DNA of 64,000 nucleotides, from assembly GCA_028023455.1 (NCBI GenBank), contig JAQFVV010000006.1, positions 1,426,001 through 1,490,000 on the forward strand. The letters run 5' to 3'. Of this stretch, positions 4,338-57,804 are shown piece after piece. This DNA comes from Epiperipatus broadwayi (taxonomy: Eukaryota > Animalia > Onychophora). The translations under genes were made by a program, and so were the position numbers. Position 1 is the first letter of the stretch; each line of letters starts with the position of its first letter. The notes beneath the pieces were generated by a model. That model saw only the letters and a list, made by a program, of their open reading frames with translations. It did no database searches and was not told the DNA's origin.

Positions 4338-4431
4338 TGCCAACATTATTATTGCAACTCCAGGTCGTCTTGATGATTTATTCAATAGAAAAGTTGAAAA
4401 TTTTAATCTCGTTACATACGTCAAATCACTA
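4338..4431 (+). CDS. DDX55: DDX55 coding exon (motif Ib, IATPGRL)
   Basis: Acceptor tttgtag and donor gtaagt. 1 nt + 31 codons: ANIIIATPGRLDDLFNRKVENFNLVTYVKSL, matching DDX55 NIIVATPGRLEDMFRRK...VRSL. Phase 0 end fits the next exon. Confidence 0.93.
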
Positions 4432-11497: not shown

Positions 11498-11553
11498 GAA
11501 GTTTTAATTTTAGACGAAGCAGATCGGTTATTAGATATGGGGTTTGAAACAAG
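11498..11553 (+). CDS. DDX55: DDX55 coding exon (DEAD box)
   Basis: Acceptor atttcag and donor gtaagt. EVLILDEADRLLDMGFET + AG (phase 2, completed by the first T of the next exon to give Ser). Confidence 0.96.
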
Positions 11554-15373: not shown

Positions 15374-15560
15374 TTTAAACAGCATTTTAAGTTACTTACC
15401 AAAGGTGCGTAGGACAGGATTATTTTCTGCTACTCAGACGAAAGAAGTCGAAGCCTTAATTAGAGCTGGTTTGAGAAATCCAGTGTGTATTTCTGTCAAA
15501 GAAAAAAATTTGGAAAATTCAGATGCCAAAACCCCCAATACTCTAAAAAATTATTATACA
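15374..15560 (+). CDS. DDX55: DDX55 coding exon (motif III, SAT)
   Basis: Acceptor tttttag and donor gtaagt. [44 protein letters not shown]...[11 protein letters not shown] is diagnostic of the DDX55/Spb4 subfamily ([15 protein letters not shown]). Confidence 0.96.
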
Positions 15561-19333: not shown

Positions 19334-19708
19334 TCTCTCACTGTGAAAACATTTTTCTCTTATGATAACTAAAAACGTCTGGCAGTTAAAAATTGCCATC
19401 TTGGAATAATTGATGGGAATAGAAAACGACATATCACTAAGTCTTATTTATCTAACATGAATAACTGTTATTAAAATGACTATTTTAAATATAAATTCAT
19501 AACACTTTCTCTAAATTTGTTAAAATAATTTTTAAAATATATTAATTTTTACAATAAAAAAAAAAGGTAGATTTCATATCTGAGAAACCTTTATAATAAA
19601 ACTTTGTACTCATAACAATTATGAAAATTAGTATTTAATAGTGTTAATATATTAACATCACGATCACCATTTTGTATGCTTACACACACTGTTAAAATAA
19701 TAGCAAAT

Positions 19709-19845
19709 TCTTCATACAGTAGTATCACCCAGTGCAAGCTTTAGTAATCAATGGATGCAAGAAGGTTCGTGCATAATTCACAAACCTTCTTGCATCCATT
19801 GATTACTAAGGCTTACACTGGGTGGCACTACTGTATGGAGATATT
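19709..19845. mobile_element. Family B 3'-end mini palindrome
   Basis: CATACAGTAGTATCACCCAGTGCAAGC...GCAAGAAGGTTCGTGC / CACAAACCTTCTTGC...TTACACTGGGTGGCACTACTGTATGGAGA. Confidence 0.75.
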
Positions 19846-20989
19846 AAGTTAAGTGTGGTGAATAGATATGGTTATTTGGGAATTATTTTAAGTAATCAGA
19901 AAAATTTTTTGGATGAATGAGAGAAAAAATTGATAAATGAAGCAAAGAAAAGAAAGGGATTGATAAAGAAATTAACAGTGTTTTCATATAATAAATATGA
20001 TGTAGCTAGAATTGTATGGAAGGGAGTTGCAGTAGCAGGGTTAACATATGGTAATGATGCATTATGTGTTAGTAAAGGGGTATTAGATTATTTAGAAAAA
20101 AGTTCAAGTGGAAGTAGGACAACATGCATTGGGTGCAGATGTATGGACAGCAAAGGAGGCAATTCAAGGAGAAATGGGATGGTCATGTTTTCATATGAGA
20201 GATGCAAAAAGTAAAATGAAAATATTTGGTAAATTGCAGTTTATGGATAATAAAAGAATAGCCAAAATAGTATTTAATTGGGTTATGAGTAAAGGGCAAG
20301 TAACAAGATGGGTGAGAAAGGTGATGCGGTATGCAAAAGATTTGGATAAAGAATTTATATCAGTATATTTGTACAAAAGATGGGATGATTGTGTTAAGAG
20401 GATTGTTGAGTGTTATAGTAGTAAGGAATGGGATAAAAGAATAGATTTATTAATAAAGAATAGGGAGTTAGAGAGATGGAGAAATAGTATGGAGAGTAAA
20501 AAGAGTTTAAATATATAGTTGCGAGTTAATATATGATAATAGTAAGGAAAGTAGTTTATTGTTTAAGGCTTGAACGGGAACTTTAGCAACAAGAGAATAT
20601 ACATGTAAATGGAAAAATATGGGTGATTTATTTTGTAAATTATGTAAGGAAGGAATAGAAAATATTAGGCATCTGTTAATTGAATGTAAATGCTTGAAAA
20701 CAGAAAGGTTACATATAATGAAGTTATGGAAGAATAAATATGAAAAAAGTGATTATACAGAAAGTGAATTATTGGTTTTTATGCTGGCTTTGGGAAAAGA
20801 TAAGGGGGATTTAGATATAAAGGCTATAGAGTTGACAAAAATTATGTTGTGGAAATGGGATGGAGCAGAATATGGGAAAACTTAGAGTGGGGAATGGAAA
20901 ATTAAGTGACTAACAGGTTTATCTGGGCATAATTGCTGAGATATTCTTGACTTCGTTTAAGGAGAAGCCACAGTACATCACATCACATC
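19846..20989 (+). mobile_element. 5'-truncated non-LTR retrotransposon (RT C-terminus + CCHC zinc knuckle, (ACATC)n tail)
   Basis: Frameshifted ORF pieces: ARIVWKGVAVAGLTYGN, EAIQGEMGW, CKLCKEGIENIRHLLIEC (Cx2Cx7Hx4C). 3' end GGAGAAGCCACAGTACATCACATCACATC. A second copy lies at 41345-41920. The clade is not firmly assigned. Confidence 0.8.
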
Positions 20990-21465: not shown

Positions 21466-21511
21466 ACCCAAGATGTGCATTTCATATTGATCCAGCACTC
21501 ATCAGTTGGAC
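21466..21511 (-). ncRNA. Minimal type I HHR motif (family A-related)
   Basis: Minus strand reads GTCCAA-CTGATGA-GTGCTGGATCAATAT-GAAA-TG CA CA-TC-TTGGGT. Stem I is 6 bp with two wobbles, stem III is ATG/CAT, the triplet is AUC, and stem II is weak. Confidence 0.65.
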
Positions 21512-22205: not shown

Positions 22206-22920
22206 TACAAGTTAAATTCGTAATAAGATAATGTCAACAGGTGAATGGATTTAAATACATGGGTAATGAGTGAAGACGGAAGAAGGAAAGATGAAATTAA
22301 AAGGAGATAGCATTGGCAAAGGAGGTGTTCGTTAAGAGAAAGAAAATATTTTTTTTGAATCTTTGAAAAGAGAATTGCGGGAAGAATTAATTGAGTATTA
22401 TGTGTGGAGTGTATTATTGTACGGTCATGAAACGTGGATAATGAGTAAAAGAATTATGAGCAGAATGATGGTCTTTAAAATGTGGATGTGGAGAAGATTA
22501 GAAAAATTAGCTGGATGAATAAATGGCAAAAAAAAAAGATTAATTTCCTAAATTAATCTTTTTTTTTTTCAATTGCTCTTTCTGAAACATCTCATTTGCC
22601 ATTTTATTCATCCAGCTAATTTTTCTAATCTTCTCCACATCCACATTTTAAAGACCATCATTCTGCTCATAATTCTTTTACTCATTATCCACGTTTCATG
22701 ACCATACAATACTACACTCCACACATAATACTCAATTAATTCTTTCCGCAATTCTCTTTTCAAAGATTCAAAAAAAATATTTTCTTTCTCTTAACGAACA
22801 CCTCCTTTGCCAATGCTATCTCCTTTTAATTTCATCTTTCCTTCTTCCGTCTTCACTCATTACCCATGTATTTAAATCCATTCACCTGTTGACATTATCT
22901 TATTACGAATTTAACTTGTA
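22206..22920. repeat. Near-perfect 325-bp inverted repeat of an RTE LINE fragment (tail-in foldback)
   Basis: 22206-22530 is the reverse complement of 22595-22920 with only a few differences. The arms encode RTE motifs (YVWSVLLYGHETWIMSK, MWMWRRL). A perfect hairpin sits at the centre (22528-22569). Confidence 0.9.
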
Positions 22921-23290: not shown

Positions 23291-25274
23291 CATTACTGAT
23301 ATATATTATAATGGTCGACCGAACCTCCCTAATCTAATCTGCCATACCAGGGTGCCACCAGGCCATTTGAACCTGGAAAATTTAAATAGTAGGCAGATAC
23401 GCACGGGAAAGGTTACTCTTTTATCGAATTGAAAGCACCAGTCACTAGCTCAGGGAGAAGTCGTTACCATATATATTGTTATTTAAATCTTCATTCTTAT
23501 TTTTAGCTTTAAAATCCACTCAACAATGAAAGAAATTAATTACTTCTACAACATCTGCTTTATATTTTATCATAGAATATCCTAAGTCTATGTATATATA
23601 TTGCAATGGACAGCAGGCACTCTTAATATCCATCACCAGAGAGTGCAACTAGACTTATAGCCTAAAAATGATTGTCTACTGCTGAGGATACCAAGTATAA
23701 ATGCCTACCACAGCTATACCATTATTCAGACATTTAATATTGTCTCTGGTTCACAGAGAGCAGAGATTCTTGCAAATATCAATTGGCAGAGTAGACTCCA
23801 GTAATCAAAACACTGAAACAAATTAACAATCAACAAAAAAATACTTATTTATAGCTTAGTATAATACAATTCAAATACAACAGAGTTTAAATATGACAAG
23901 ATTCAAATATGGAAGAGTTTAAATATACAAAGTTCAAATATGACAATCTAAATATAATAATTCACATATATCAGAGGAATCCAACGATATAAATAAAATG
24001 CGTTTGAATGGTAATGAACTTTTTTTTGGTATCCTTAAATATTACACTTCACAAAAATTTACACATAATATTGGATCACCTCTTAAGTTTGAAATTACTC
24101 TTATGATTTATCAGGATATGCATATACATATTATGCTTTTGCATTAAACAAATAATAATAAAGCAGCTTAAATTTCCCCGAAAATGTTCATGCATGCGGA
24201 CCATTACAATATTAACCCAATACACTGTGCATGTGACTCTACACCATTATTAAATGGAACAACAATAAATAAACCTCTGAATTATCCATATTATAAAAGC
24301 AAAAAAGTATAATTCATGGAGAGAAATGTCTTTAACCAATGCAAACACAATCATCTGCAATTAACCCATGTGGGCGTAATATATATCATGGGGAAATGAG
24401 TAAACCATAAATTCACATGGTTGATAAATACCAAGGATTGCTATATACCACGCACACATGTACACATACCAATTCTTTTCATTTCAGATACATGCGATGC
24501 AAACAATGTAAACAAACAAAGCTGCTAACAAATTTAACCAGTTTATTAAATGATTTATAGTTATGACCATATCATGTTGAATATATTAATGATATTTAAA
24601 ATATTTTTAGAGATTAATTCTTAAATATAAAGTAAAATAAAATAAAAAATCTCTTTTTAAAACTTCTTTAAAATCAACTTTGTTCTAAAACTACATTGTA
24701 ATTAATAACGGTTGCAGAAGCAATTTTTTTTTAAAATTAAAACTCATTATAAGGGGAAAAGAAAATTAAAATTTAAGAAATAAACCGTTTCTTCTGTCTC
24801 AAATGGTTAAAAGAAAATAAACTATTATAGTGACTGTAAAATAAAAGATTTTTAAGATTCTATATCCTGTCACGATATCAAATCCACTGACAGAAAAAAG
24901 TAAAGTTTTATGATATTTAAATAATAAAATAAGTCAAAATAAATTTGTAAATCATTTAAGTTATAAATATCAAAAGATAAATATACAGATTAATATTAGT
25001 TAATGTGAAAAATCCATAAATCATTTAAATTAAATATCATTGGCTTGTTGGTAGTTTAGGAAATGTCTTATAGTTCATAAATAAAAGATTACCTTTAAGT
25101 ACAAGAAAAAAGATGGTGAAGGAGATATTATTTTTCAGAAATGTTGAATTCTATATATAAATTGTTGTGTTTATTCTGGATTATAGACCCGACCTACAGA
25201 AATAATACTAAGACCAGTATTACAATTAATACATTTACTATATGTACAAATATATACAATACAATATACAGTGT

Positions 25275-25463
25275 AATTAAAATTACCCCAAATCCAAAAT
25301 TCACCAGCCAGCATAAAATAATATTAAAATCCAAGGTTCCGCTACAGCGTTCTAAGTGTAAAGAAACTAAAACTACACTATATATAATATTAAACATTAC
25401 CCACACCTTCCTCCACCCCCTTAATATTGAAAGAACTCTTAAATAAATTAATTGCTTCAGAAT
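25275..25463 (-). mobile_element. Diverged 3' end (pLTR) of the Penelope-like element
   Basis: Homologous to 30171-30385 (AATTAAAATTACCCCAAATCC...GAACTCTTAAATAAATTAATTGCTTCAGAATA). The HHR region is degenerate. Confidence 0.75.
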
Positions 25464-25483
25464 ATACAAGTGAATATGTACAA

Positions 25484-25984
25484 TGTTGAATATTGTAGTT
25501 CAACGTAAACTCTGGGTTCTGCCTACCGCTTCCAGCTACATCTGCTGGCTTGCCTCTCGGGTAGGGTGTATGGCTCTTCCAGCTTTACAAGACAGCTTGC
25601 CTCGAGCCGAGAGTGGTCTTAGCAGCGTCCGGTCTCTGTGGGACTTGCCTAGTTGCGTAGACTAAATAGCATAGTGCGATCATGGGAATACTTGCTGCTA
25701 TTCAGGTTAGCAGAGATTCCCTGGGAGAACGCAAAGAGTCTTTTCAGGTTAGACAGACGTTCTTCCCTGATTCTCACAAAAGGCTGATTATTTATGCCTA
25801 GATCCCTGACCTTATTGAAAACCTTCAGATTCAGCAAGCTTTGTTGCTTATTGGCCTGTAATAATCATTGGCTAGGTTTTTATCTATACATCAGCCTATT
25901 GGCCTGTGGCAAACAATGCTTAATCCGATCAGATAAGGAGGCATCTGGAATAGTCCACTTCTGAGAGAAGGGAGGACTATAACA
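25484..25984. mobile_element. GC-rich ~500-bp island, possible solo LTR
   Basis: Abrupt GC increase bounded by TGTT...AACA. No convincing TSD and no partner LTR in the window. Confidence 0.35.
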
Positions 25985-27464: not shown

Positions 27465-27872
27465 CATCACATGATCACCATTTCTTATGCTTGCTCAAGC
27501 TGTTAAACAGGCAAAACTCTTTATACAGTAGTGCCACTCAGTGCGAACCAGAGTAATCAATGAATGCAAGAAGGTTTGTGCATAAAATGCCTATTTGGTG
27601 CCTACTCATTCAATATCCCCTGACTATTTCTAGCTTGTGGCTTTCATCAGTGAGGAGCCTTGGATCTGATAGCCATGCACCTAGGTCTTAGGATCAGTGC
27701 TTTCATATCCAAGGCTCCTCACTGATGAAAGCCACAAGCTAGAAACTAGTCTGGGGATATTGGATGAGTAGGCACTAGATAGGTATTTTATGCACCAACT
27801 TTCTTGCATCCATTGATTACTCTGGCTTGTATTGAGTAGCACTACTGTATGGATAGTTTTGCCTGTTTTATC
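27465..27872. mobile_element. Family B tail-out inverted pair centred ~27690
   Basis: Minus arm 27465-~27690 (decayed HHR at 27616-27656) and plus arm ~27695-27872 (intact HHR at 27716-27757). Confidence 0.88.
27716..27757 (+). ncRNA. Minimal type I HHR (family B)
   Basis: TCCTCA-CTGATGA-A AGC cacaa GCT A-GAAA-C TA G-TC-TGGGGA. 6-bp stem I, 3-bp stem II, palindromic ACTAGT stem III, GUC triplet. Confidence 0.85.
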
Positions 27873-29789: not shown

Positions 29790-30135
29790 GGATCAGATTG
29801 ACTTAAGATCAACATGGGTACGATAACAATATTGATATCAACAAGGGCTTTGAGCATTCCAGTCTTGGATTTTCAATGAAATGGATGGCTGAAGGGTTGG
29901 AGAGTGGAGAAGATTGAAGCTTATCCATTAAAGTTTAAAGATTTGCTATTTTAATATAAACTGAGCATTGATTGTATATATGTGTGGGAGATGGTGATCT
30001 GGACCAACTGATGAGCGCTGGTTCAACGTGAAATACATGTATTGGAGATCATTTGGTCATATGTATCAATTGTATAAGATAGATTGGATAGATGTAGGGT
30101 GCTTGAAAGTTCAAGTCCTTTATAATTACATTAAG
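29790..30135 (+). mobile_element. Family A retrozyme-like element
   Basis: Homologous to 35041-35330, 56338-57066 and 58123-58270. Contains the HHR at 30004-30045. Confidence 0.8.
30004..30045 (+). ncRNA. Minimal type I HHR (family A)
   Basis: CCAA-CTGATGA-GCGCTG gtt CAACGT-GAAA-TACATG-TA-TTGG. Stem I is CCAA/TTGG and the triplet is GUA. Confidence 0.7.
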
Positions 30136-30170
30136 TTACATATAGACAATATACATATATTTAAATATAT

Positions 30171-32517
30171 AATTAAAATTACCCCAAATCCAAAATTCAA
30201 CCAGACCAGCAAAAAATAATATTAAAACACAACCAAAAGTTTCACTGCTACAAGCAGACTTCTCAAGTGTAAAGAACAACAAAAACTACACAATATATAT
30301 AATATTAAACATTACCCACAAATCCATTCACTTCCCATCCACCCTTAATATTAAAAGAACTCTTAAATAAGTTAATTGCTTCAGAATAATAAATTTTCAA
30401 TAATAAAGATTCTTTAATTCTTCTTTTGATTTCATTTCTCTCAAAGAAGACAACCTTAGCTTCATCAAAATTAATAGTGTGGCCTGTATCTTTTTCATGA
30501 CATACAAAGCAGAACTAAGATATCTATTTTTAACTCTACTTTTATGAACCTTTATTCTTTCATTTAAACTCAAACTACTCTGACCTATGTAAACCTTCTT
30601 ACAAATAAACAAGGAATAAAATATACTATACCAGGAATAGTCTTTCTATCAAAAACTTCTTTTGTATTATTTAATAAATTATTCAATGTAACACCCCTTT
30701 TCCAAGCAATTTTCTTATTTCCAAACAATTTACTATTTCTACACACAATTTTATAAGAAGACAATTTAAATGGCAAAGAAATAAAATCATATTTTTTCTC
30801 TATCCTTTACATCCTTAACAGTATTACTATTAAATAAAATACTTTTAACAAATTTATCAGAGTAACCAACCCTCAGGTAATCTTTATAAAATTGACCTTT
30901 CTGAAACAAAGCTACCCCACTAGAATTATTTAATTTATTATTCCTATGACAATAATTCCTTAAAGCAGCTACTTTATGAGATACAGACTGATAGCTATCA
31001 TGTTTAATTAGAGATCTTAATTCTTTACTTTTAACTAAATGACTGCACAATAAACAATTAGTCTCTACATTTCTAATCACCAAAAGATCTAATAATTTTA
31101 ACTTACCAAAATCTAACCCCCCTCCTAACATAAATTTTATAGAAGGATCAAAACAATTAAACCCATTTACAAATTCCTTCAATTTATCATTCTCAATTAC
31201 AAATAAACAATCATCAACATAACTGACAAATAACTTTACATATAAACAATTCTTTTTAATAATAATTTCCTCTTCCATATAATTAATATAAACTGAACAT
31301 ACTAAAGGAGAAATAATATAACCTATTATCCACCCTTCCTTAATTTTATAAAAATTACCATTATAAGTAAAATACATAGAATCTTCCAATAATAAAAGCA
31401 AATCTTTAATTACCTTAATTTTATTTTTTGTTAAAGAACTTTTTTAATCAATACAGACATAAGAACATCAATACTGCTTAACCTATTAACAGACTGATAC
31501 ATATTTTCAATATCTAAACTGCCAAATACCCAATTACTTTCCATTTTAAAATTATTAATCTTATCAAAAGCCTCAAAAGAAGAAGAAACTGTGTAATGAC
31601 CAAAATCAACAAATTGTTTTAAAAAATTATTCAAGAATCTAGAAATACCCTCTACAACACTACCTGTAAAATCAAAAATAAATCTTAAAGGAAAACCATC
31701 TTTATGAGTCTTAATATTCACAAACATCTTAGCTGATGTAAAATCATTTGGATAACATTTTAAATAATCTACACTATTAAAATTTTTTAAATTAACCCAT
31801 TTTCTTCATAATATTTATCAACTTTCTTTTAATCAAATTACCTGGATCTTTATCTAAAAACATATATTTACCATTATTTAATTCTTTATCCATTTGCTCT
31901 TTGAATTCATCTCCTTTCGTAATGACAAACCTACCAGCTTTGTCTTCATGAGAAATGATCACATCATTAGCAATTAACCTATTCTTAAGATGTCTAACCT
32001 CAGCAGGATTAACCACAAATTTTTCTTTCCTTTTTAAACTTTTATTCAAAATCGATTGAACACCAACTTTCTGCTCATCACTCAAATTACTAGATTCAAT
32101 AGACAAAATTGTATCAAAAACTATATTTTTTGAATGAAATGGAACAAAATTAGGGCCTTTACCAAGAATATCTAATTCTCTATCATTTAACTTAATATCA
32201 GAAAGATTAACAACTCTATTATCAGAAGCATTACTCTCATACCCCTTATCACTACAATAAGTTTTATTAACTTTCCCAAACAACCACTTTAATTTTCTTT
32301 CATATTTCTTACAATAGAAATTTGACCTATTCTGTCTAAATTGCCTCATGAAAAAATTCAAAATTGAATAATTAAAATCTTGCCTCCTGTCTAAATAATA
32401 TCTATTTCTTTTATATACATAAATAAATTTGTAAAACTTTACAAAATTTTCTTTCAAAAAACTATTCAAAATATATGTTTGTAACTTAAAAACCAAATTC
32501 CTATTTTGAAGCAACCT
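30171..32517 (-). mobile_element. Penelope-like retroelement, left arm (RT + GIY-YIG; frameshifted, 5'-truncated)
   Basis: ORF pieces 31792-32514, 31431-31727 (KTHKDGFPLRFIF, SLDIENMY), 30787-31401 (ISPLVCSVYINYME, YVDDCL) and 30397-30776 (GIVYFIPC..YIGQS..ERIKVH). Confidence 0.93.
30227..30270 (-). ncRNA. Variant type I HHR (U3-A8) in PLE 3' end, left arm
   Basis: Minus strand reads ACAC-TTGAGAA-GTCTGCTTGTAGCAGT-GAAA-CT ttt GG-TT-GTGT. Confidence 0.7.
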
Positions 32518-32527
32518 TTTTTTTTTT

Positions 32528-34922
32528 AGGATAGAGTCTTTAAGATGGCAGATTTATTTTCATAAAAAATGTAGGGAATTTAGTGTTTTTCCTAGGTGTT
32601 GTGTTATTAATTTTAGTAGAAATAAAAAATTGCTTCAAAATAGGAATTTGGTTTTTAAGTTACAAACATATATTTTGAATAGTTTTTTGAAAGAAAATTT
32701 TATAAAGTTTTACAAATTTATTTATGTATATAAAAGAAATAGATATTATTTAGACAGGAGGCAAGATTTTAATTATTCAATTTTGAATTTTTTCATGAGG
32801 CAATTTAGACAGAATAGGTCAAATTTCTATTGTAAGAAATATGAAAGAAAATTAAAGTGGTTGTTTGGGAAAGTTAATAAAATTTATTGTAGTGATAAGG
32901 GGTATGAGAGTAATGCTTCTGATAATAGAGTTGTTAATCTTTCTGATATTAAGTTAAATGATAGAGGATTAGATATTCTTGGTAAAGGCCCTAATTTTGT
33001 TCCATTTCATTAAAAGAACATAGTTTTTGATACAATTTCGTCTATTGAATCTTGTAATTTGAGTGATGAGCAAAAAGTTGGTATTCAATCGATTTTGAAT
33101 AAAAGTTTAAAAAGGAAAGAAAAATTTGTGGTTAATCCTGCTGAGGTTAGACATCTTAAGAGTAGGTTAATTGCTAATGATGTGATCATTTCTCGTGAAG
33201 ACAAAGCTGTTAGGTTTGTCATTATGAAAGGAGATGAATTCAAAGAGAAAATGGATAAAGAATTAAATAATGGTAAATATATGTTTTTAGATAAAGATCC
33301 AGGTAATTTGATTAAAAGAAAGTTGATAGATATTATGAAGAAAATGGGTTAATTTAAAAAATTTTAATAGTGCAGATTATTTAAAATGTTATCCAAATGA
33401 TTTCATATCAGCTAAGATGTTTGTGAATATTAAGACTCATAAAGATGGTTTTCCTTTAAGATTTATTTTTGATTTAGATTCTTGAATAATTTTTTAAAAC
33501 AATTTGTTGATTTTGGTCATTACACAGTTTCTCCTTCTTTTGAGGCTTTTGATAAGATTAATAATTTTAAAATGGAAAGTAATTGGGTATTTGACAGTTT
33601 AGATATTGAAAATATGTATCAGTCTGTTAATAGGTTAAGCAGTATTGATGTTCTTATGTCTGTATTGATTAAAAAAAGTTCTTTAACAAAAAATAAAATT
33701 AAGGTAATTAAAGATTTGCTTTTATTATTGGAAGATTCTATGTATTTTACTTATAAAGGTAATTTTTATAAGATTAAGGAAGGTTGGATAATAGGTTATA
33801 TTATTTCTCCTTTAGTATGTTCACTTTATATTAATTATATGGAAGAGGAAATTATTATTAAAAAGAATTGTTTATATATAAAGTTATTTGTCAGATATGT
33901 TGATGATTGTTTATTTGTAGTTGAGAATGATAAATTGAAGGAATTTGTAAATGAGTTAAATTGTTTTGATCCTTCTATAAAATTTGTGTTAGAAGGAGGG
34001 GGGTTAGATTTTGGTAAGTTAAAATTTTTAGATCTTTTGGTGATTAGAAATGTAGAGACTAATTGTTTACTATACAGTCATTTTGTTAAAAGTAGAGAAT
34101 TAAGATCTATAATTAAACCTGATAGCTATCAGTCTGTATCTCATAAAGTAGCTGCTTTAAGGACTTATTGTCATAGGAATAATAAATTAAATAATTCTAG
34201 TGGGGTAGCTTTGTTTCAGAAAGTTCAATTTTATAAAGATTACCTGAGGGTTGGTTACTCTGATAAATTTGTTAAAAGTATTTTATTTAATAGTAATATT
34301 TGTAAGGATGTAAAGGATAGAGAAAAAATATGATTTTATTTCTTTGCCATTTAAATTGTCTTCTTATAAAATTGTATGTAGAAATAGTAAATTGTTTGGA
34401 AATAAGAAAAATGCTTGGAAAAGGGGTGTTACATTGAATAATTTATTAAATAATACAAAAGAAATTTTTGGTAGAAAGACTATTCCCGGTGTAGTATATT
34501 TTATCCCTTGTTTATTTTGTAAGAAGGGCTACATAGGTCAGAGTAGTTTGAGTTTAAATGAAAGAATAAAGGTTCATAAAAGTAGAGTTAAAAATAGATA
34601 TCTTAGTTCTGCTTTGTATGTCCATGAAAAAGATACAGGTCACACTATTGATTTTGATGAAGCTAAGGTTGTCTTCTTTGAGAGAAATGAAATCAAAAGA
34701 AGAATTAAAGAGTCTTTATTATTGAAAATTTATTATTCTGAAGCAATTAACTTATTTAAGAGTTCTTTTAATATTAAGGGTGGATGGGAAGTGAATGGAT
34801 TTGTGGGTAATGTTTAATATTATATATATTGTGTAGTTTTTGTAGTTCTTTACACTTGAGAAGTCTGCTTGTAGCAGTGAAACCTTTGGTTGTGTTTTAA
34901 TATTTTTTTTTGCTGGTCTGGT
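32528..34922 (+). mobile_element. Penelope-like retroelement, right arm (RT + GIY-YIG; frameshifted, 5'-truncated)
   Basis: The frame is open from ~32528 (RIESLRWQIYFHKKC...) into ORF 32630. RT lies at 33482-34333 (SLDIENMY, ISPLVCSLY, RYVDDCL, KFLDLLV). GIY-YIG lies at 34344-34817 (GVVYFIPCLFCKKGYIGQS...ERIKVH...HEKDTGHTIDF...KESLLL...AIN). It is an inverted copy of 30171-32517. Confidence 0.95.
34852..34895 (+). ncRNA. Variant type I HHR (U3-A8) in PLE 3' end, right arm
   Basis: ACAC-TTGAGAA-G T CTGCT tgt AGCAG T-GAAA-CC ttt GG-TT-GTGT. Stem I is ACAC/GTGT, stem III is ACC/GGT, the triplet is GUU, and cleavage is predicted after 34891. It lies 35 nt after the GIY-YIG stop codon. Confidence 0.75.
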
Positions 34923-34954
34923 CATAAATATAAAAGCCAAGAAAAGTTAAAATT

Positions 34955-35700
34955 AAGGTGACACTTTAGTCTTCATTAAAATCATTATGATTATTCATGA
35001 ATGTTAAATATTTGATAGTACATTTTATTTAATTAATTAATATATAGGGGATTTGAACCCAGACTTTCATACGACCCTCAACCATCCATGCTATCTCTTA
35101 CTGCTGATACACTTGATCACACATATGTTGAAAAGATAAATAATCACCAATATTCTTATTTCATGCTAAACCAGAACTCGTCAGTTGGTCCAGATTATCA
35201 TCTCCACACATATATACAATCAATGCTCAGCTTATATTAAGATAGTCAATCTTCAAACTTCAATGGACAGACTTCAAACACTCCACCCATAACTCTTCAG
35301 CCATCCATTTCATTGAAAATCTGATGATGGAACGCGCAAAGCCTGAAAGTCGGAGTTCAAACCCCTATATATTACATATAGAAGTGCAGGTATGAAAATG
35401 CCTGTACTGTAGAAAAAATTCATATTTTAATTAATTAAGTAAATTTAACTTTGAAAGATAAGTTGTTTGAAATCTCTAGAGTATTTTTATATCTATTATA
35501 TATTCTTTATTAGCCATCTTTTGCCATTAAATAAATTTGATGTTAATACAGAAAATGGAGTTATTATTTAGGATCTTTGTTTAAAATGATTCTTTAAATC
35601 TTTGAAAGTTAAATTTATATAATTAGTTAAATAAAAAGCACTGTCAAATATTTAGCAGTCCTAAATCATCATAAGTAATATAGACTAAAATTTCACCTTG
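34955..35700. mobile_element. Old MITE-like foldback (~80-bp diverged TIRs) hosting a family A insertion
   Basis: 34955-35035 (AAGGTGACACTTTAGTC...AAATATTTGATAGTAC...) is an imperfect reverse complement of 35620-35700 (...GCACTGTCAAATATTT...GACTAAAATTTCACCTT). Confidence 0.55.
35041..35425 (-). mobile_element. Family A element (minus body + short inverted plus 3' tail) with ~13-bp TSD
   Basis: The HHR lies at 35146-35189 (minus: ACCAA-CTGACGA-...-GAAA-TAAGAA-TA-TTGGT). An inverted 3' tail starts at ~35342. Flanks TTTAATTAATTAA lie at ~35028-35040 and ~35426-35438. Confidence 0.8.
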
Positions 35701-38390: not shown

Positions 38391-39917
38391 ATATAAAGAA
38401 TTATATTCAGATTTATTGACACCATAATACAATTCAACTATTAAGCCACTTACTTATAAATGCTAAGCAATGACTTGAAAAAGATGTCTCAGCCTCTCTC
38501 TAGATTTTCGTAGATAAATAAAAAAGCATATTTAAACATCACGAACAAGTGTGGAATTTAAATTAACTGTGATATTGTCAAAACTTCATATTTAAAGGCA
38601 TAGTAGACAATTATTTCTTTTAGCGCCTTTTTAAACACACTCTTGCTTAATAATTTAGTATATATGTGAAGTATTCACATAACACACAGCATTTTACAAT
38701 TATACTGTTTAATGTGAAGCTTTAATAATAGTCAATTTAAATATCACATTTGTTTATGGTTGTTTAAATATATATTGTCTTTTACACCCTGACATAGTAA
38801 CTAAAGAGAAGTGGAATTATCTTTTTCTACTTGTTGCTAAGCAATTATAAACGAATGGTTTAATGGTTGAATTGTTAGTAGTTTTGATTTGTGGGCAGAT
38901 TCTTTAGTATCACACCCATTAGTCTGGCTATGATACCAATTTTGTTATGATTTTGCTATATATTTTTAGAATCTTATAGAATGTCCTTATGGAATATCAA
39001 TAAGGGGTGCAGGACATATTTTCATACAATAAATTGGTTAAAAGAATAGTTCCGTATGCAAATAATTTTGTCACAGTAGTTCTGTATAATGAAGTGTCAT
39101 ATTTTTTTAAATTGTTAAATACATCAGCAACACGTCGCACTCCATGTTGTAAGTCAGTGTTGTCAAATATAGCAACATGTCGGATTCCATGTTGGAACTC
39201 GACATTCAAATTCTTGATTTTTAAAAATTATCCAAAATATAATATAGTTTTAAAATTGTGATTATAGAAATTTGATGACCATTGAGGATATAATGTTATA
39301 TTTTGATCGTGGGCTCTATCATCTAATAACATTAGCCTTATCTACTGGCACAGAATCTAAATATTTTACTAATTTTTAAAGTGCACGGCTTTGTTTTCAA
39401 CTTTAATCCCAAATTATTATTTTTTTTTACAAATCCTCAGACTCTGTCTTTTTGACTGAAAATTTTAAGCATATTGATCTAGGAAGGGCACATTTGTAAT
39501 ATATCATATTTTTTCAAAGCCCATCCTTCTAAACACTCAAGTTATGGATCGTAATTCACCCTACTATTTTGGAATAGTTTCTTAGAGACTAGAGGCTGCT
39601 CCTTCACAATTAATTTTGTTTGTTAACAGATTTAGATATTCTACTTAATAATACTCTTGAGGAAATAATATTCTGTTTCTAGTTAATAATGGAAAAGTTA
39701 GTTATTTGATACATCATGTAATATTATGGTACAAAATGTGGCAGATGTTAGTAAGTAACTAAGAATCACATGATCACCATTCTTTATGCTTACCCAAGCT
39801 GATAATGCAGAGGCAAAACTCTCCATACAGTAGAGCCACTCGGTGCAAGCCAGAGTAATCAATGGATGCAGAAAAGTTTGTGCATAAAATGACTATCTAG
39901 TGCCTTCTCATCTAATA

Positions 39918-39959
39918 TCCTCAGACTAGTTTCTAGCTTGTGGCTTTCATCAGTGAGGA
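39918..39959 (-). ncRNA. Minimal type I HHR (family B, perfect stem I)
   Basis: Minus strand reads TCCTCA-CTGATGA-A AGC cacaa GCT A-GAAA-CTAG-TC-TGAGGA. The U.G wobble of other copies is replaced by U-A. Confidence 0.87.
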
Positions 39960-40099
39960 GCCTTGGATCTGAGAGCACTGATTAGGATCTAAAGCAACTC
40001 TCCAGCAGCAACCTTTTACTTTTTAAATTAACTATACAGTTTTGACTCCAAAATGAAACAATAATGTTTTCAATTCAAGCTGATTTACTTGTATAGGCA

Positions 40100-40139
40100 C
40101 CTCACTGATGAAAGCCACAAGCTAGAAACTAGTCTGGGA
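40100..40139 (+). ncRNA. Minimal type I HHR (family B)
   Basis: CCTCA-CTGATGA-AAGCCACAAGCTA-GAAA-CTAG-TC-TGGGA. Stem I is 4 bp, and the motif sits right at the inversion junction. Confidence 0.75.
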
Positions 40140-41344
40140 TATTAGATGAGTAGGGATTAGATAGGGATTTTACATACAAACCTTTCTGCATACATTGATT
40201 ACTCTGGCTTGCACTTGGCACTACTGTTTGGAAAGTTTTGTCTCTGTGTTATCAGCTTGTGTAAGCATAAAGAATGGTGATCATGTGATGTTCAGTGGTT
40301 TAATACCAATCCTTCCCAATAGGATTATGGTGAATATGGTACCAAAGACATGAAAATGTATAGATGTTGAACTGAGTCCAGATCTATATGACTATACAAA
40401 TAAATGAGCTTGAATTGAAAACATTATTGTTTTCATTTTGGACTCGATGCTGTATAGTTAACTAAAAAAGTAAAAGGTGGTTGCTGGAGGGTTGCATTAG
40501 ATTCTAAGATCTAGGTGCAGTGCTCTCAGATCCAAGGAGCCACAAGCTAAGAACTAGTCTAGGGATATTGGATGAATAGCCACTAAATAGGGATTTTATG
40601 CACCAACCTTTCTGCATCCATTGATTATTCTGGCTTACACTGAGTGGCACTACTGTATGGAGAGTTTTGCCTCTGTGTAATTAAGTATCAGTAGGAATGC
40701 AATTTATTATTCTAATCTCTAATAAAGAATCATCCTACAAACGTCTTAAAAAGTGTTTAGATCCTTTTTGACAAATGGTCTGTGTATATCATGGTTTACG
40801 TTAAAGAGGTGTTTAATTTCTGTAACACATGAATATGCTCATTGTATATACTATTCGAGCTTCATTGGTAGATTGGTCCTACTGTGAGCTTTAGGATTGC
40901 ATTAAAGAATTTTTAAAGGTGATGCTTTGAAAAAATTAGTTCATTAGGTTGAGTAAATGAACTTACATTCCTAAGAAGTATGAGTAGTTGAATATAGCAA
41001 ACAAATCTCACAGGATGCTAACTCTAGCATGATGTCTATAATGAAAATGTATTTATTATGTTAGATTGTTTTTTTTTTGGTGTGTCTTTCAGATGATTTG
41101 TATACATTTTCTAATAACATATGTCCCTTAGAATGGATTATTTAATATAGAATTATATAAATATTAAAATGGTAATAAATAAAATATGCATTTATATCCA
41201 CATGTAAATTGTCCTTAGCTATAATTTATCGTTTTCATATAGAAATTTTATTCACCATTTTCAACTATTATTAAAGTAAAAGTATTTATCAAAATTTTAA
41301 AATTTAGTTCATGATTTAGTCAGTAGAGGACAGTATATTATATT

Positions 41345-41920
41345 TTTTGTTGAGTGTTATAGTGGTAAGGAATGGGATAAAAGAATAGATTTATTAATAA
41401 AGAATAGGGAATTAGCGAGATGGAGAATTAGTATGGAGAGTAAAAAGAGTTTAAATATATATAGAAATAAACAGAATATTAGGTGCGAGTAAGGAAAGTA
41501 GTTTATTGTTTAAGGCTCAAACGGGATCTTTAGCAACAAGAGAATATATATGTAAGTGGAAAAATATGGGTGATTTAGTCTGTAAATTATGTAAGGAAGG
41601 AATAGAATATATTAGGCATCTGTTAATTGAATGTAAATGCTTGAAAACAGAAAGGGCACATATAATGAAGTTATGGAAGAATAAATATGAAAAAAGTGGT
41701 TATACAGAAAGTGGATTGTTGGTTTTTATGCTGGGTTTGGGAAAAGATTAGGAGGATTTAGATATAAAGGCCATAGAGTTGATAAATGAGATGGAGCAGA
41801 ATATGGGAAAACTTAGACTGGGGAATGGAAAATAAAGTGGCTAAAAGGTTTCTCTGGGCATAATTGGTGAGATATTCTTGATTCCGTTTAAGGAGAAGCT
41901 ACAGTACATTACATGACATT
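41345..41920 (+). mobile_element. Second 5'-truncated copy of the zinc-knuckle LINE
   Basis: Closely similar to ~20400-20989: CKLCKEGIEYIRHLLIEC, and tail GGAGAAGCTACAGTACATTACATGACAT. Confidence 0.8.
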
Positions 41921-42296
41921 ATTGAACTTGTAGTAAAGCCCATGTTTTTTCCATGCGCCCACACATTGATTACCATTTGATATACTATTTTAAATTATTA
42001 ATTGACCGTAGTAAATACTTTAAAATGTTGCATTTATATTTTTGTCATTGTGATTTTTTATGTCTGTTTTAGACTCTAATTAAAATAACGAAGTTTAAAT
42101 AAATTATTTTCATCTCTTCTTTAATTATCTAGTTTTTTTATTTTTAATATGACTTTGTTTATCGGACTAGCCTCAATTTCTTTTTTTGTATTTACTGACT
42201 AACTATTCATCTCACTTTAATTACTTGTGTTGAGATATATATCATTGCATATTATTTTCATTTATAATATAACCCCAATACTTACATACATACATT

Positions 42297-43038
42297 AATT
42301 AAAATTACCTCAAATCCAAAACTCAACTAGACTAGTCACGAAAAACGAAAAAACAAAATCGAAAACACAACCAAAGGTTTCACTGCTACAAGCAGACTTC
42401 TCAAGTATAAAGAACTACAAAAACAACACCATATATATATGTTAAACATTACCCACAAATCCATTTACTTCCCATCCCTCCTTAATATTAAAAGAACTCT
42501 TAAATAAGTTAATTGCTTCAGAATAATACATTATCGATAATAAAGATTTTTTAATTCTTCTTTTTATTTCATTTCTCACAAAGAAGGCAACCTTAGCTTC
42601 ATCAAAATTAATAGTGTGGCCTGTATCTTTTTCATGGACATACAAAGCAGAACTAAGATATTTATTTCTAATCCTACTTCTATGAATGTCTTAGTTCTGC
42701 TTTGTATGTCCATGAAAAAGATACAGGCCACACTATTAATTTTGATGAAGCTAAAGTTGTCTTCTTTGAGAGAAATGAAATAAGAAGAATTAAAGAATCT
42801 TTATTATTGAAAATGTATTATTCTGAAGCAATTAACTTATTTAAGAGTTCTTTTAATATTAAGGGTGGATGGGAAGTAAATGGATTTGTGGGTAATGTTT
42901 AACATATATATATGGTGTTGTTTTTGTAGTTCTTTATACTCGAGAAGTCTGCTTGTAGCAGTGAAACCTTTGGTTGTGTTTTTGATTGTTTTTTCATGGC
43001 TAGTCTGGTTGAGTTTTGGATTTGGGGTAATTTTAATT
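42297..43038. mobile_element. Mini tail-out palindrome of the PLE 3' end (GIY-YIG C-terminus + HHR on each arm)
   Basis: Minus arm 42297-~42687 and plus arm ~42689-43038. Both encode YVHEKDTGHTINFDEAKV...GFVGNV and both end at GGGGTAATTTTAATT. HHR variants lie at 42365-42408 (-) and 42936-42979 (+, U4C). Confidence 0.92.
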
Positions 43039-43522
43039 ATTTATTGACTAATTTAGCTTCATGCTTGTAATGTATACATACATTAGGCATTTATTAAAAG
43101 ATACGTCCACTCCAATCCTAAGTTTAAAAAAAAAAAAACTGCTCTAGAGATTAGTTTTACAATAATTATACAAACCAGTCTTTGAACCACAAATATGCCC
43201 ATATATAGAACATACTGGTCGATTTCTTTTTTTTTATTTGATATTTTACAATCTGTCTTTTAATTTCTTCAGAAGATAACTATTTTTTCTGAAATATTTC
43301 AACACCATGTCTAATTGTAACTCTCCAATGTATTCTATTCTCTGCCATGTCTTCTTAATAGAAACAGTCTTCTTTAAAATATCTTTATGATAATCTTTGT
43401 AATGAAAATGGTGTCTACTTTCCCAAGAAAACCATAATCAAGTCACTGTAAAGCGCTTTTAAAAAACTTCATATTAATCAGTGTTTCACACATCTAATTT
43501 AACTGTGTATGGTTTTACAATA

Positions 43523-45286: not shown

Positions 45287-45870
45287 TAAATACTTTTAGA
45301 GAAAGGCTTTAACTGTTATCATATTTACTTTGAATGCTTATAATAGTCAACCGATATCTTTTTTTGACTATAGAGGGACCTCTCAAACTTTGACACAAGC
45401 TAGCGACTTTATAAAGATAAGAACGGCCGTCTTATCTTTAACCTAAATTACCACTTAAAAAATGAAGAGACTAACAGCTTCACGCGCCCAAGTCGAGATG
45501 CTTCAAGATTGCTCTTTATAAGTGATAGTTTAGGTTAATGATAAGACGGCTATTTTTATCTTTATGAAATTGTTATCTTGTGTCGAGGTTTAAGAGGTCC
45601 CTCTATAGTCAAAGAAAGACATCCTTTGGCTATTATAAACATTCAAGGAGCACATGATAAAGGTTAAAGTCTTTCTCTAAAAGTATTTATGTATAAATCA
45701 CTGAATGCATACCTTTATTTGCTTTTCTTAGTAAAAGATTAAAACTGAAACATAATTGTTCAATAATCTTTTACTAAGAAAAGCAAATAAAGGTATGCAT
45801 TCAGTGATTTATACATAAATACTTTTAAAGAAAGGCTTTAACCTTGATCATGTGATCCTTGAATGTTTAT
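45287..45870. repeat. Chained double palindrome (unit in -,+,- orientation)
   Basis: 45287-45455 is inverse to 45525-45689 (diverged), and 45635-45741 is inverse to 45764-45870 (near perfect). Confidence 0.8.
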
Positions 45871-56337: not shown

Positions 56338-57066
56338 ATTTGAAATACAGACATTCTTGTACCTGAAACTTAATTGTAAATATAGGGGATTTGAACTGAG
56401 GCTTTCAAGCAACCTTCAACTATCCAAACTATCTCGTACTACTGATGCACATGACCACATACATGCAGAGAAGATAAATAATCACCAATTTTGTGCTGAA
56501 CCAGCCTCCATCAATTTGTCCAGATTACCATCTCCCACACATATATATATAATCAGTCCTCAGTTTATATTAAGATAGCAAATCTTTATACATTAGTGGA
56601 CAGGCTTCAATCTACTCCAACCTCCAACTCTTCAGCCATCCATACCATTGAAAATCCGATGATAGAATGGCCAAATCCCATGTTGATGCAAATATTATTG
56701 TTATGCCCATGTTGACCTCAAGTCACTCTGACTCCTGATGTATAGAACAGTATCCATTTAAATACATAGAAGAGGGATGGGCATTCTATCATCGGATTTT
56801 CAATGGTATGGATGGTTGAAGAGTTGGAGGTTGGAGTAGATTGAAGCTGTCCATTAAAGTATAAAGATTTGCTATCTTAATGTAAACTGAGGACTGATTA
56901 TATATATGTGTGGTAGATGGTAATCTGGACCAACTGATGATGGCTGGTTCAACACGAAATTGGTGATTATTTATATAACCTGCATGTATGTGGTCATGTG
57001 TATCAGTAGTATGAGATAGTTTGGATAGTTGAAGGTTGCTTGAAAGGTTGAGTTCAAATCCCCTAT
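56338..57066. mobile_element. Family A tail-out palindrome with perfect 14-bp TSD
   Basis: TSD GTATACAATCTAAA at 56324-56337 and 57067-57080. Minus arm to ~56740, plus arm from ~56775. Both HHRs (~56486-56520 and ~56929-56964) lack stem III. Confidence 0.9.
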
Positions 57067-57804
57067 GTATACAATCTAAAGTTTTTTTATGTTTTTGTCT
57101 GCAATAATAATGTTAAAAAAATAATGGTTTTATAAATATTAAAACAATATATTTATATTTACAGGAAGACGATTTTTTATTATTATTAAAGTTATCTCAG
57201 TTTTGTCGTTAATGATTCATTTAGAAAATTTTGTATACATTTTCTTACTCATATGAAATATCCTTCCGTCATTTATAGTTCATTAATTAGTCTATAGAGG
57301 GCAGGATCTGTTAGACTTCTCAAAGGTTTTGAATTGTGTATAAAAGAAGCGAATGTTTTTCCATCACCATTGATGCTATCCATCTTTTTGTCGAGATAAA
57401 TAAAAAATAATATTTTTTTAATTCGAGTATTTAATTGCGCTTCTGTATTGCTTTTGCTATGGCCGATACCAATTTGTTTAATTTGCATAATATTAAACAG
57501 TTTTATAAGTCTTTTCCCGAATACATCTTTTTTTTTTTTGAAATGTGAATTGTCTCTGTATTCGTTTATCTTATAATATTTGTATACACGATTACGTTAG
57601 ACATTCAGATGGGTTTATTGGATTTCATAAGAAGTTCAAGACCTGTAAGTGACAACTAGTCCATGATTTATAGATCTTCCCGGTGCCTGCTACTGAATCA
57701 CCACCAAAACTTACAGGACACTTACTTTCACAAACAATATATGTTACTTCCATTCTAGGAAATCAATTTAAAACCCGTTTTTTCAATATATGTAAGTGGA
57801 TGAA

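Follow-up and report, generated by a model that had tools for sequence, protein, structure and literature searches.

A nearly full-length head-to-head pair of Penelope-like element copies in Epiperipatus broadwayi, probably left by a single integration event

Organization of the locus

The stretch analyzed here, hereafter the window, comprises 64,000 nucleotides of forward-strand DNA from the onychophoran Epiperipatus broadwayi (GenBank assembly GCA_028023455.1, contig JAQFVV010000006.1, positions 1,426,001 to 1,490,000), and all positions given are those of the window. Within it lies a 4.75-kb inverted repeat formed by two arms of a Penelope-like element (PLE), arranged head to head with both 3' ends pointing outward. 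Judging from the exon motifs described further below, the insertion likely lies inside an intron of a DDX55/Spb4-like helicase gene. The palindrome had been noticed in an earlier sequence-only reading, whose limits of 30171-34922 held to within one base, the tail of the left arm ending at 30170. The parts of the pair are as follows.

30162-30169: left copy of an 8-bp target-site duplication, TAAATATA, directly outside the left arm
30170-32527, sense on the minus strand: left arm with its tail
30170-30199, minus strand: 30-nt 3' tail, present on the left arm only, TGAATTTTGGATTTGGGGTAATTTTAATTA
30200-32527, minus strand: left arm proper, a PLE pseudogene that starts at about codon 47 and includes the 3' end
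32517-32527: T11 run where the two heads meet (read as A11 on the sense strand of the left arm)
32528-34922, sense on the plus strand: right arm with its 5' extension
32528-32619, plus strand: central 'spacer', which extends the right arm in the 5' direction and encodes a PLE N-terminal motif (translation RIESLRWQIYFHKKCREFSVFPRC)
32620-34922, plus strand: right arm proper, a PLE copy ending at a short 3' site; pseudogene
33473-34330, plus strand: reverse transcriptase core, a 286-amino-acid open piece (Pfam RVT_1)
34314-34814, plus strand: GIY-YIG endonuclease with CCHH motif, a 167-amino-acid open piece
34925-34932: right copy of the 8-bp target-site duplication, TAAATATA, 2 nt (CA) past the right arm

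An inverted-repeat search over 28-37 kb returned one colinear chain pairing 30200-32524 with 32620-34922, and a single BLAST alignment of 30200-32526 against 34922-32620 showed 95.9% identity over 2333 columns, gaps counted. In a global alignment the arms were 97.4% identical, with 60 substitutions (38 transitions and 22 transversions) among 2297 aligned bases and internal indels of 2, 28, 1, 3, 1 and 1 nt. It is the right arm that has the 28-nt gap (33474/33475). The palindrome is real, its length being far beyond chance.

The central 92 nt (32528-32619), from the T-run to the start of arm homology, are open in the frame of the right arm. Their translation, RIESLRWQIYFHKKCREFSVFPRC, aligns with the FLKKC..NV[F/Y]PKF block; the matching residues are 16-40 in P0037 and P0054 and 25-48 in P0002. 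This block is a conserved part of the PLE N-terminus, and the spacer is therefore element coding sequence in plus sense that continues the right arm. With the spacer included, the right arm begins at about codon 16, the left arm begins at about codon 47, and each reaches the 3' end; the first 15 or so codons and any 5' leader are absent from both. Both arms are thus nearly full length. The missing first codons were also sought in the 3' region plus tail, where some PLEs encode them, and this candidate was rejected: no Met was present there, nor any likeness to the N-termini of relatives. The T11 run faces an A-rich stretch of the right arm (32614-32629), and it may be either diverged homologous sequence or filler or microhomology at the join.

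Much of this anatomy had been anticipated by the sequence-only reading, which placed a T-run at about 32516-32527, described scattered substitutions and a deletion of about 27 bp, let the right arm extend about 100 nt further 5' in an open frame, and held that nearly the whole element is inverted. Each of these points stood, with the values given above.

Identity of the element

The same reading had assigned reverse transcriptase and GIY-YIG endonuclease domains to outward-pointing arms of about 2.35 kb, and both domains were recovered. In the right arm, Pfam RVT_1 matched 33482-34330 with an E-value of 8.6e-9; the corresponding match in the left arm was weak (E 5.6e-4). Relatives of the reverse transcriptase were searched with the 286-amino-acid piece among 1.84 billion representative proteins. 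This search gave 4041 matches, the best with an E-value of 1e-24 and about 30% identity. Full-length matches were 780-820 amino acids long, with RVT_1 followed by a C-terminal GIY-YIG domain, and the query aligned at their residues 350-640, approximately. The order of domains in these relatives is that of canonical endonuclease-positive PLEs.

The nuclease piece, taken alone, matched Pfam GIY-YIG on 34344-34814 with an E-value of 0.003, which is under the cut-off. Aligned by BLASTP with the C-terminal GIY-YIG domain of the full-length protein P0008, which itself passes the Pfam cut-off, it gave an E-value of 1e-10. Two Cys residues lie between its GIY-like and YIG motifs, and His residues follow downstream. 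The CCHH feature, with two Cys between GIY and YIG, is universal in canonical PLE nucleases (PMC8557442). A CX2-5CxxC linker upstream of GIY-YIG separates the Neptune and Nematis groups from Penelope and Poseidon, which lack it (PMC8557442). No such linker was seen in the frame map upstream of the GIY-YIG domain, where one Cys occurs in the roughly 60 residues before the GIY-like motif. The element is a PLE with a C-terminal GIY-YIG domain, probably most like the Penelope/Poseidon group; the absence of the linker fits this placement, and the eight relatives looked up by cluster carry no clade names.

In a tblastn comparison with the right arm, residues 25-590 of P0002 covered 32549-34177. In the N-terminal region the FLKKC..PKF block is present, GxKF reads GxNF and DKG reads DKA. 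A word-indexed search with the 161-amino-acid N-terminal piece returned no homologue. No direct terminal repeat of the pseudo-long terminal repeat (pseudo-LTR) kind was found in or around the right arm or in a self-comparison of the window. Pseudo-LTRs formed by a partial tandem are typical of full PLE units and are not needed in every 5'-truncated insertion.

Rfam reported no hammerhead ribozyme over the whole window at the gathering threshold, nor at E<=5 over 29.5-35.6 kb, and two candidate hammerhead stretches, including 34836-34922, folded no better than shuffled sequence. By eye, a string resembling a hammerhead but with a changed core (UUGAGAA ... GAAAC) can be read at 34852-34895 in the PLE 3' region, without Rfam or folding support.

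Decay of the two copies

Both arms are pseudogenes, and four and five disabling lesions were counted in the two. According to the frame maps, two frameshifts fall in the same alignment columns of both arms, one at about 33339-33349 on the right and 31805-31795 on the left, the other at about 34314-34330 on the right and 30806-30790 on the left. The remaining lesions are private. The right arm has a stop at 33011-33013 in addition to its 28-nt gap, and in the left arm single-nucleotide gaps lie near 31446, 30606 and 30500, along with an in-frame gap of 3 nt near 31127. The left arm is read on the minus strand in open pieces at 32526-31795, 31805-31434, 31443-30790, 30806-30588, 30645-30400 and 30514-30308. 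The arms have gathered about 1.3% substitutions each since insertion.

Because two frameshifts are common to both arms, the template that was copied was probably defective already, and an RNA that was already frameshifted would mean that the insertion was catalyzed in trans. The sequence-only reading had proposed the copy as the likely source of reverse transcriptase and endonuclease for the non-coding hammerhead families around it. This proposal was not supported, since both arms are broken and their template was probably defective; the 30-nt tail motif of the PLE does not occur in the hammerhead repeat families of the window. Other copies of the family in read contigs differ in length by one base at both of the common frameshift sites, and a large part of this PLE family may descend from defective templates.

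The 3' ends and the target site

On the sense strand both arms share the end ...GCTGGTCTGGT, where the right arm stops (34922). The left arm continues into the 30-nt tail. Four matches to a 26-nt core of this tail are present in the window (at 25274, 30170, 42296 and 43014), where none would be expected by chance, and each of them is a 3' end of this PLE family. The insertion target is AT-rich. For random pairs of junctions, with offsets of 0-3 nt allowed, the probability of an 8-nt match such as the target-site duplication ranged from 0.001 over the whole window to 0.006 in the local AT-rich flanks.

The footprint published for PLE insertions consists of an adjacent inverted, 5'-truncated copy, a tail of 30-40 bp at one end, duplications of 8-10 bp and AT-rich targets (PMC8557442, PMC3846280). 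A one-sided tail of 30-40 bp has also been described in PMC11167929, and head-to-head is the commonest arrangement of PLE copies (PMC3846280). The one-sided tail, the duplication around the whole pair and the AT-rich target match this footprint.

These ends also bear on whether the pair arose at the DNA level, either as an inverted duplication of one PLE copy by replication template switching or break repair, or as two insertions abutting at their 5' ends. In favor of such an origin, the arms differ by 2.6% plus indels, so that time has elapsed and the original state is not directly visible, and diverged hammerhead repeats, 82% identical, flank both arms in inverted orientation. Against such an origin, the target-site duplication brackets the pair, and the arms stop at different element termini, separated by 30 nt, as in PLE insertions. 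There is no larger duplicated block: the intervals between arms and flanking repeats do not align, and the flanking repeats are 82% identical versus 96-97% for the arms. The same head-to-head geometry moreover recurs at many truncation points. An origin at the DNA level was therefore judged quite improbable.

Read-level data

The read data consisted of short contigs of runs probably derived from the assembled sample, together with small runs of the same and related organisms. The PLE family proved to be very abundant. Four runs gave 46,476 contig pieces of about 90 nt, with word depths of 10^4-10^6, and these pieces are not locus-specific. The sole locus-specific contig, 684 nt long, covered unique left flank without mismatch.

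Since tandem and inverted PLE structures are known to trouble assemblies (PMC8557442), the pair was also considered as an assembly artefact, arising from a chimeric long read with a fold-back or from two PLE loci wrongly joined. The words of the center are nearly absent from the short-read contigs, as such an artefact would have it; this near-absence is accounted for by the way contigs are built, in which branches of low depth next to very deep repeats are discarded. A fold-back read should mirror all sequence on either side of the center and yield identical arms. Here only 2.3 kb are mirrored inside 64 kb of non-palindromic sequence, and the arms differ by 60 substitutions and six indels, mostly substitutions. 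A tail is present on one arm, both flanks hold the target-site duplication, and the same geometry is found at 42296-43045 and genome-wide. An artefact thus appears very improbable, and less probable than any of the other explanations weighed here.

Origin of the head-to-head pair

We favor the reading, with a probability of roughly 0.65, that one PLE integration event left two nearly full-length head-to-head copies, primed from both ends of the break. From the anatomy, the domains, the tail, the target-site duplication and the common and private lesions we infer the following order of events, including the join. Staggered cuts by the element nuclease in AT-rich DNA would have given rise to the 8-bp duplication, and both exposed 3'-OH ends would have primed reverse transcription of element RNA near its 3' end. 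For the left arm, synthesis would have started at a distal site, which would account for the 30-nt tail, and for the right arm at a proximal site, leaving no tail. The right-arm complementary DNA (cDNA) would then have run to about codon 16, with the tip of the left-arm cDNA remaining about 92 nt behind. The right-arm cDNA would have been joined to this tip, probably by a template switch at the A/T run, and each arm would afterward have gathered its own lesions.

The steps proposed have counterparts in vitro. A purified PLE protein cleaves and extends both target strands, initiates reverse transcription at two neighboring internal sites, the distance between which equals the tail length, and prefers AT-rich targets (PMC11167929, Frangieh et al.). 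Priming from both ends of a break, which the sequence-only reading had suggested, is the better-fitting origin given the 8-bp duplication, the one-sided tail and the polarity of the loop, and it agrees with that study.

A palindrome with a short loop could also be derived from a hairpin, after target-primed reverse transcription from one nick. In such a fold-back, the tip of a single cDNA would anneal to itself tens of bases back, and the enzyme would copy its own product out to the 3' end. Self-priming has been proposed for PLE inverted junctions (PMC3846280), and an A/T run is present at the turn. Across all eight palindromic insertions of the window, whose arms range from 70 to 2300 nt, the loops stay short, at about 15-115 nt, and arm lengths at other loci are strongly correlated. 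The loop at this locus belongs to the right arm, however, and hence the right-arm cDNA would have served as template, yet the tail is found only on the left arm. Synthesis that ran past the template end should, in addition, leave an inverted duplication of the flank; a direct 8-bp duplication is found instead. That the loop is sense-contiguous with the right arm while the tail is confined to the left arm favors dual priming over fold-back of one cDNA, and we regard fold-back as unlikely.

Several observations weigh against priming from both break ends. The target-site duplication is only 8 bp long, lies in AT-rich DNA and is offset by 2 nt. The use of 34922 as a canonical short start site is suggested by analogy with the PAc element and not by other copies of the family, and the tail is present at all four of the other PLE 3' ends of the window. 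In the pair at 42296-43045 both arms have tails, and no target-site duplication is visible. No read or long contig spanning the center or the flanks was found among the contigs, which are about 90 nt long at a family word depth of about 10^5. Of six words sampled from the central 91 nt, one was present in one run and none in two others, a result that is uninformative because the contigs drop low-depth branches. Finally, two primings that are fully independent would not be expected to yield arms of nearly equal length; for this one has to assume in addition that the complex is coupled or dimeric, or that synthesis jumps to the other cDNA tip.

The last point is raised by the rest of the family. 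Many genome-read contigs join left-arm to right-arm positions at other truncation points, and in seven of the 13 such junction contigs shown the two arms differ by no more than 40 nt in length (permutation p 1.7e-4). There is thus a correlation between arm lengths at other loci, and the two syntheses seem to be coupled. We tentatively consider it possible, though on balance doubtful, that the arms of these PLEs are made in a coupled way, in which a dimeric complex copies two RNAs in step and one enzyme jumps to the cDNA tip of the other. Near-equal arms across truncation points, together with start sites of reverse transcription that are independent (a tail on one arm), would mean a dimeric complex with such a jump. 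If this were true, the arm lengths, loop polarity and tail status of an abundant family would provide a genomic read-out of how PLEs build inverted structures.

Inversions in L1 elements reportedly arise by 'twin priming', said to have been described by Ostertag and Kazazian in 2001. In that process the second primer pairs with an internal site of the same RNA; the resulting segments derive from different, neighboring parts of the element, and the 3' end is present in only one of them. Dual priming at the PLE locus would resemble it in that one event, with both break ends priming, leaves an inverted segment within one target-site duplication. It differs in that both arms here are the same sequence, each ending at the 3' terminus of the element itself.

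The pair also resembles canonical endonuclease-positive PLEs (Penelope of D. virilis, PAc of Anolis, and Pen2/Pen5 of Adineta vaga). All defining PLE features that could be examined are present in it, apart from the pseudo-LTRs, which are absent, and the hammerhead, for which neither Rfam nor folding gave a signal. The resemblance extends to the head-to-head inverted neighbor copy, the tail of 30-40 bp at one end, the short, variable target-site duplication, the AT-rich target and the heavy 5' truncation of other copies. Differences from these elements include a reverse transcriptase that is only about 30% identical to its nearest database representatives, the readings DKA for DKG and GxNF for GxKF, the lack of a direct pseudo-LTR or partial tandem in this copy, and the lack of an Rfam hammerhead match. 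Nor is the inverted copy a short piece of pseudo-LTR size; it has nearly the length of the direct one.

Hammerhead-bearing non-autonomous animal repeats ('non-LTR retrozymes') have been linked to PLE pseudo-LTRs (bioRxiv 10.64898/2026.07.22.740005). Several such repeats in the window form short-loop head-to-head pairs, as the PLE does. The element described here differs in being protein-coding, and the hammerhead repeats of the window are without its 3' tail motif; mobilization of these repeats by this PLE family would thus be hypothetical.

The head-to-head layout is already known for PLEs (PMC8557442, PMC3846280), and the pair is a clean but ordinary example of it. Less usual are an inverted copy almost as long as the direct one and a reverse transcriptase about 30% identical to anything in the representative library. 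The PLE transposition cycle is still described as undefined (PMC8557442). The value of the locus lies in a long, clean head-to-head footprint in which loop polarity and a one-sided tail can both be read, which argues for two primings over fold-back. With thousands of copies in the genome, a census of such pairs could test the both-strand extension seen in vitro (PMC11167929).

Host gene and potential double-stranded RNA

Three DEAD-box motifs were found in separate plus-strand exons upstream of the palindrome: motif Ib at 4357, motif II at 11513 and motif III at 15420. Among solved structures (PDB), the motif III exon matched best to Spb4, the yeast orthologue of DDX55, with an E-value of 5.4e-8, ahead of DDX10, DDX47 and DDX18. 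Motif and composition scans of the window revealed no helicase C-terminal exon (motifs IV-VI) after 15.7 kb. Of the earlier assignment to a DDX55 intron, the upstream part therefore stands, with DEAD-box exons present and Spb4 closest; no exon was found downstream of the palindrome in the window.

The 2.3-kb near-perfect inverted repeat in this probable intron could plausibly form double-stranded RNA upon read-through. The chemistry is plausible, and the repeat should be regarded as a potential source only. In a check for adenosine-to-inosine editing, A>G and T>C counts were equal in RNA-labelled and DNA runs, giving no sign of editing; contigs cannot show rare variants.

Neighboring repeats in the window

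Head-to-head pairs are the rule in this stretch. The palindromic insertions other than the main pair are listed here.

42296-43045: another, older head-to-head PLE pair of this family, in which both copies are 5'-truncated 3' ends with tail
19706-19845: short-loop palindromic insertion of a non-coding repeat
22206-22920: as above
27505-27868: as above
39765-40676: as above
45287-45689: as above
45666-45839: as above
56366-57084: as above

The arms of the second PLE pair are about 360-390 nt long and 91% alike, with a loop of up to about 30 nt around 42658-42688 and no visible target-site duplication. They match 34573-34911 (inverted) and 34598-34922 (direct) at 92-93%. The seven further insertions, of non-coding repeats, have arms of 70-360 nt that are 78-94% alike. 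A solitary 5'-truncated PLE 3' end with tail, about 195 nt long and 80-84% identical to the arms, lies at 25274-25468. It is directly followed by a GC-rich stretch (25474-25662, 51-57% GC; window 29% GC).

Copies of a hammerhead-bearing repeat, here called family A, converge on the main PLE pair from both sides, at 29790-30135 (plus strand) and 35033-35343 (minus strand). They are older, separate insertions. Compared with each other (29846-30054, plus, versus 35343-35138, minus), they are 82% identical, and they are not contiguous with the arms. A larger palindrome including these flanks was considered and rejected, as the intervening sequence does not align and the identities are 14 points apart. 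Their convergence may be due to chance at this repeat density, or PLE-type insertions may home to earlier ones. Four occurrences of the canonical hammerhead core string CTGATGAG-N-GAAA are present in the window (at 21480, 30008, 46622 and 58240) versus 0.19 expected, all of them in family A copies, and Rfam reports no hammerhead in the window despite these four strings.

A direct repeat of 590 nt with 89% identity was also observed at 20403-20988 and 41347-41919. Its first copy overlaps a 140-amino-acid open frame on the plus strand (20096-20515) and probably represents a different transposable element.

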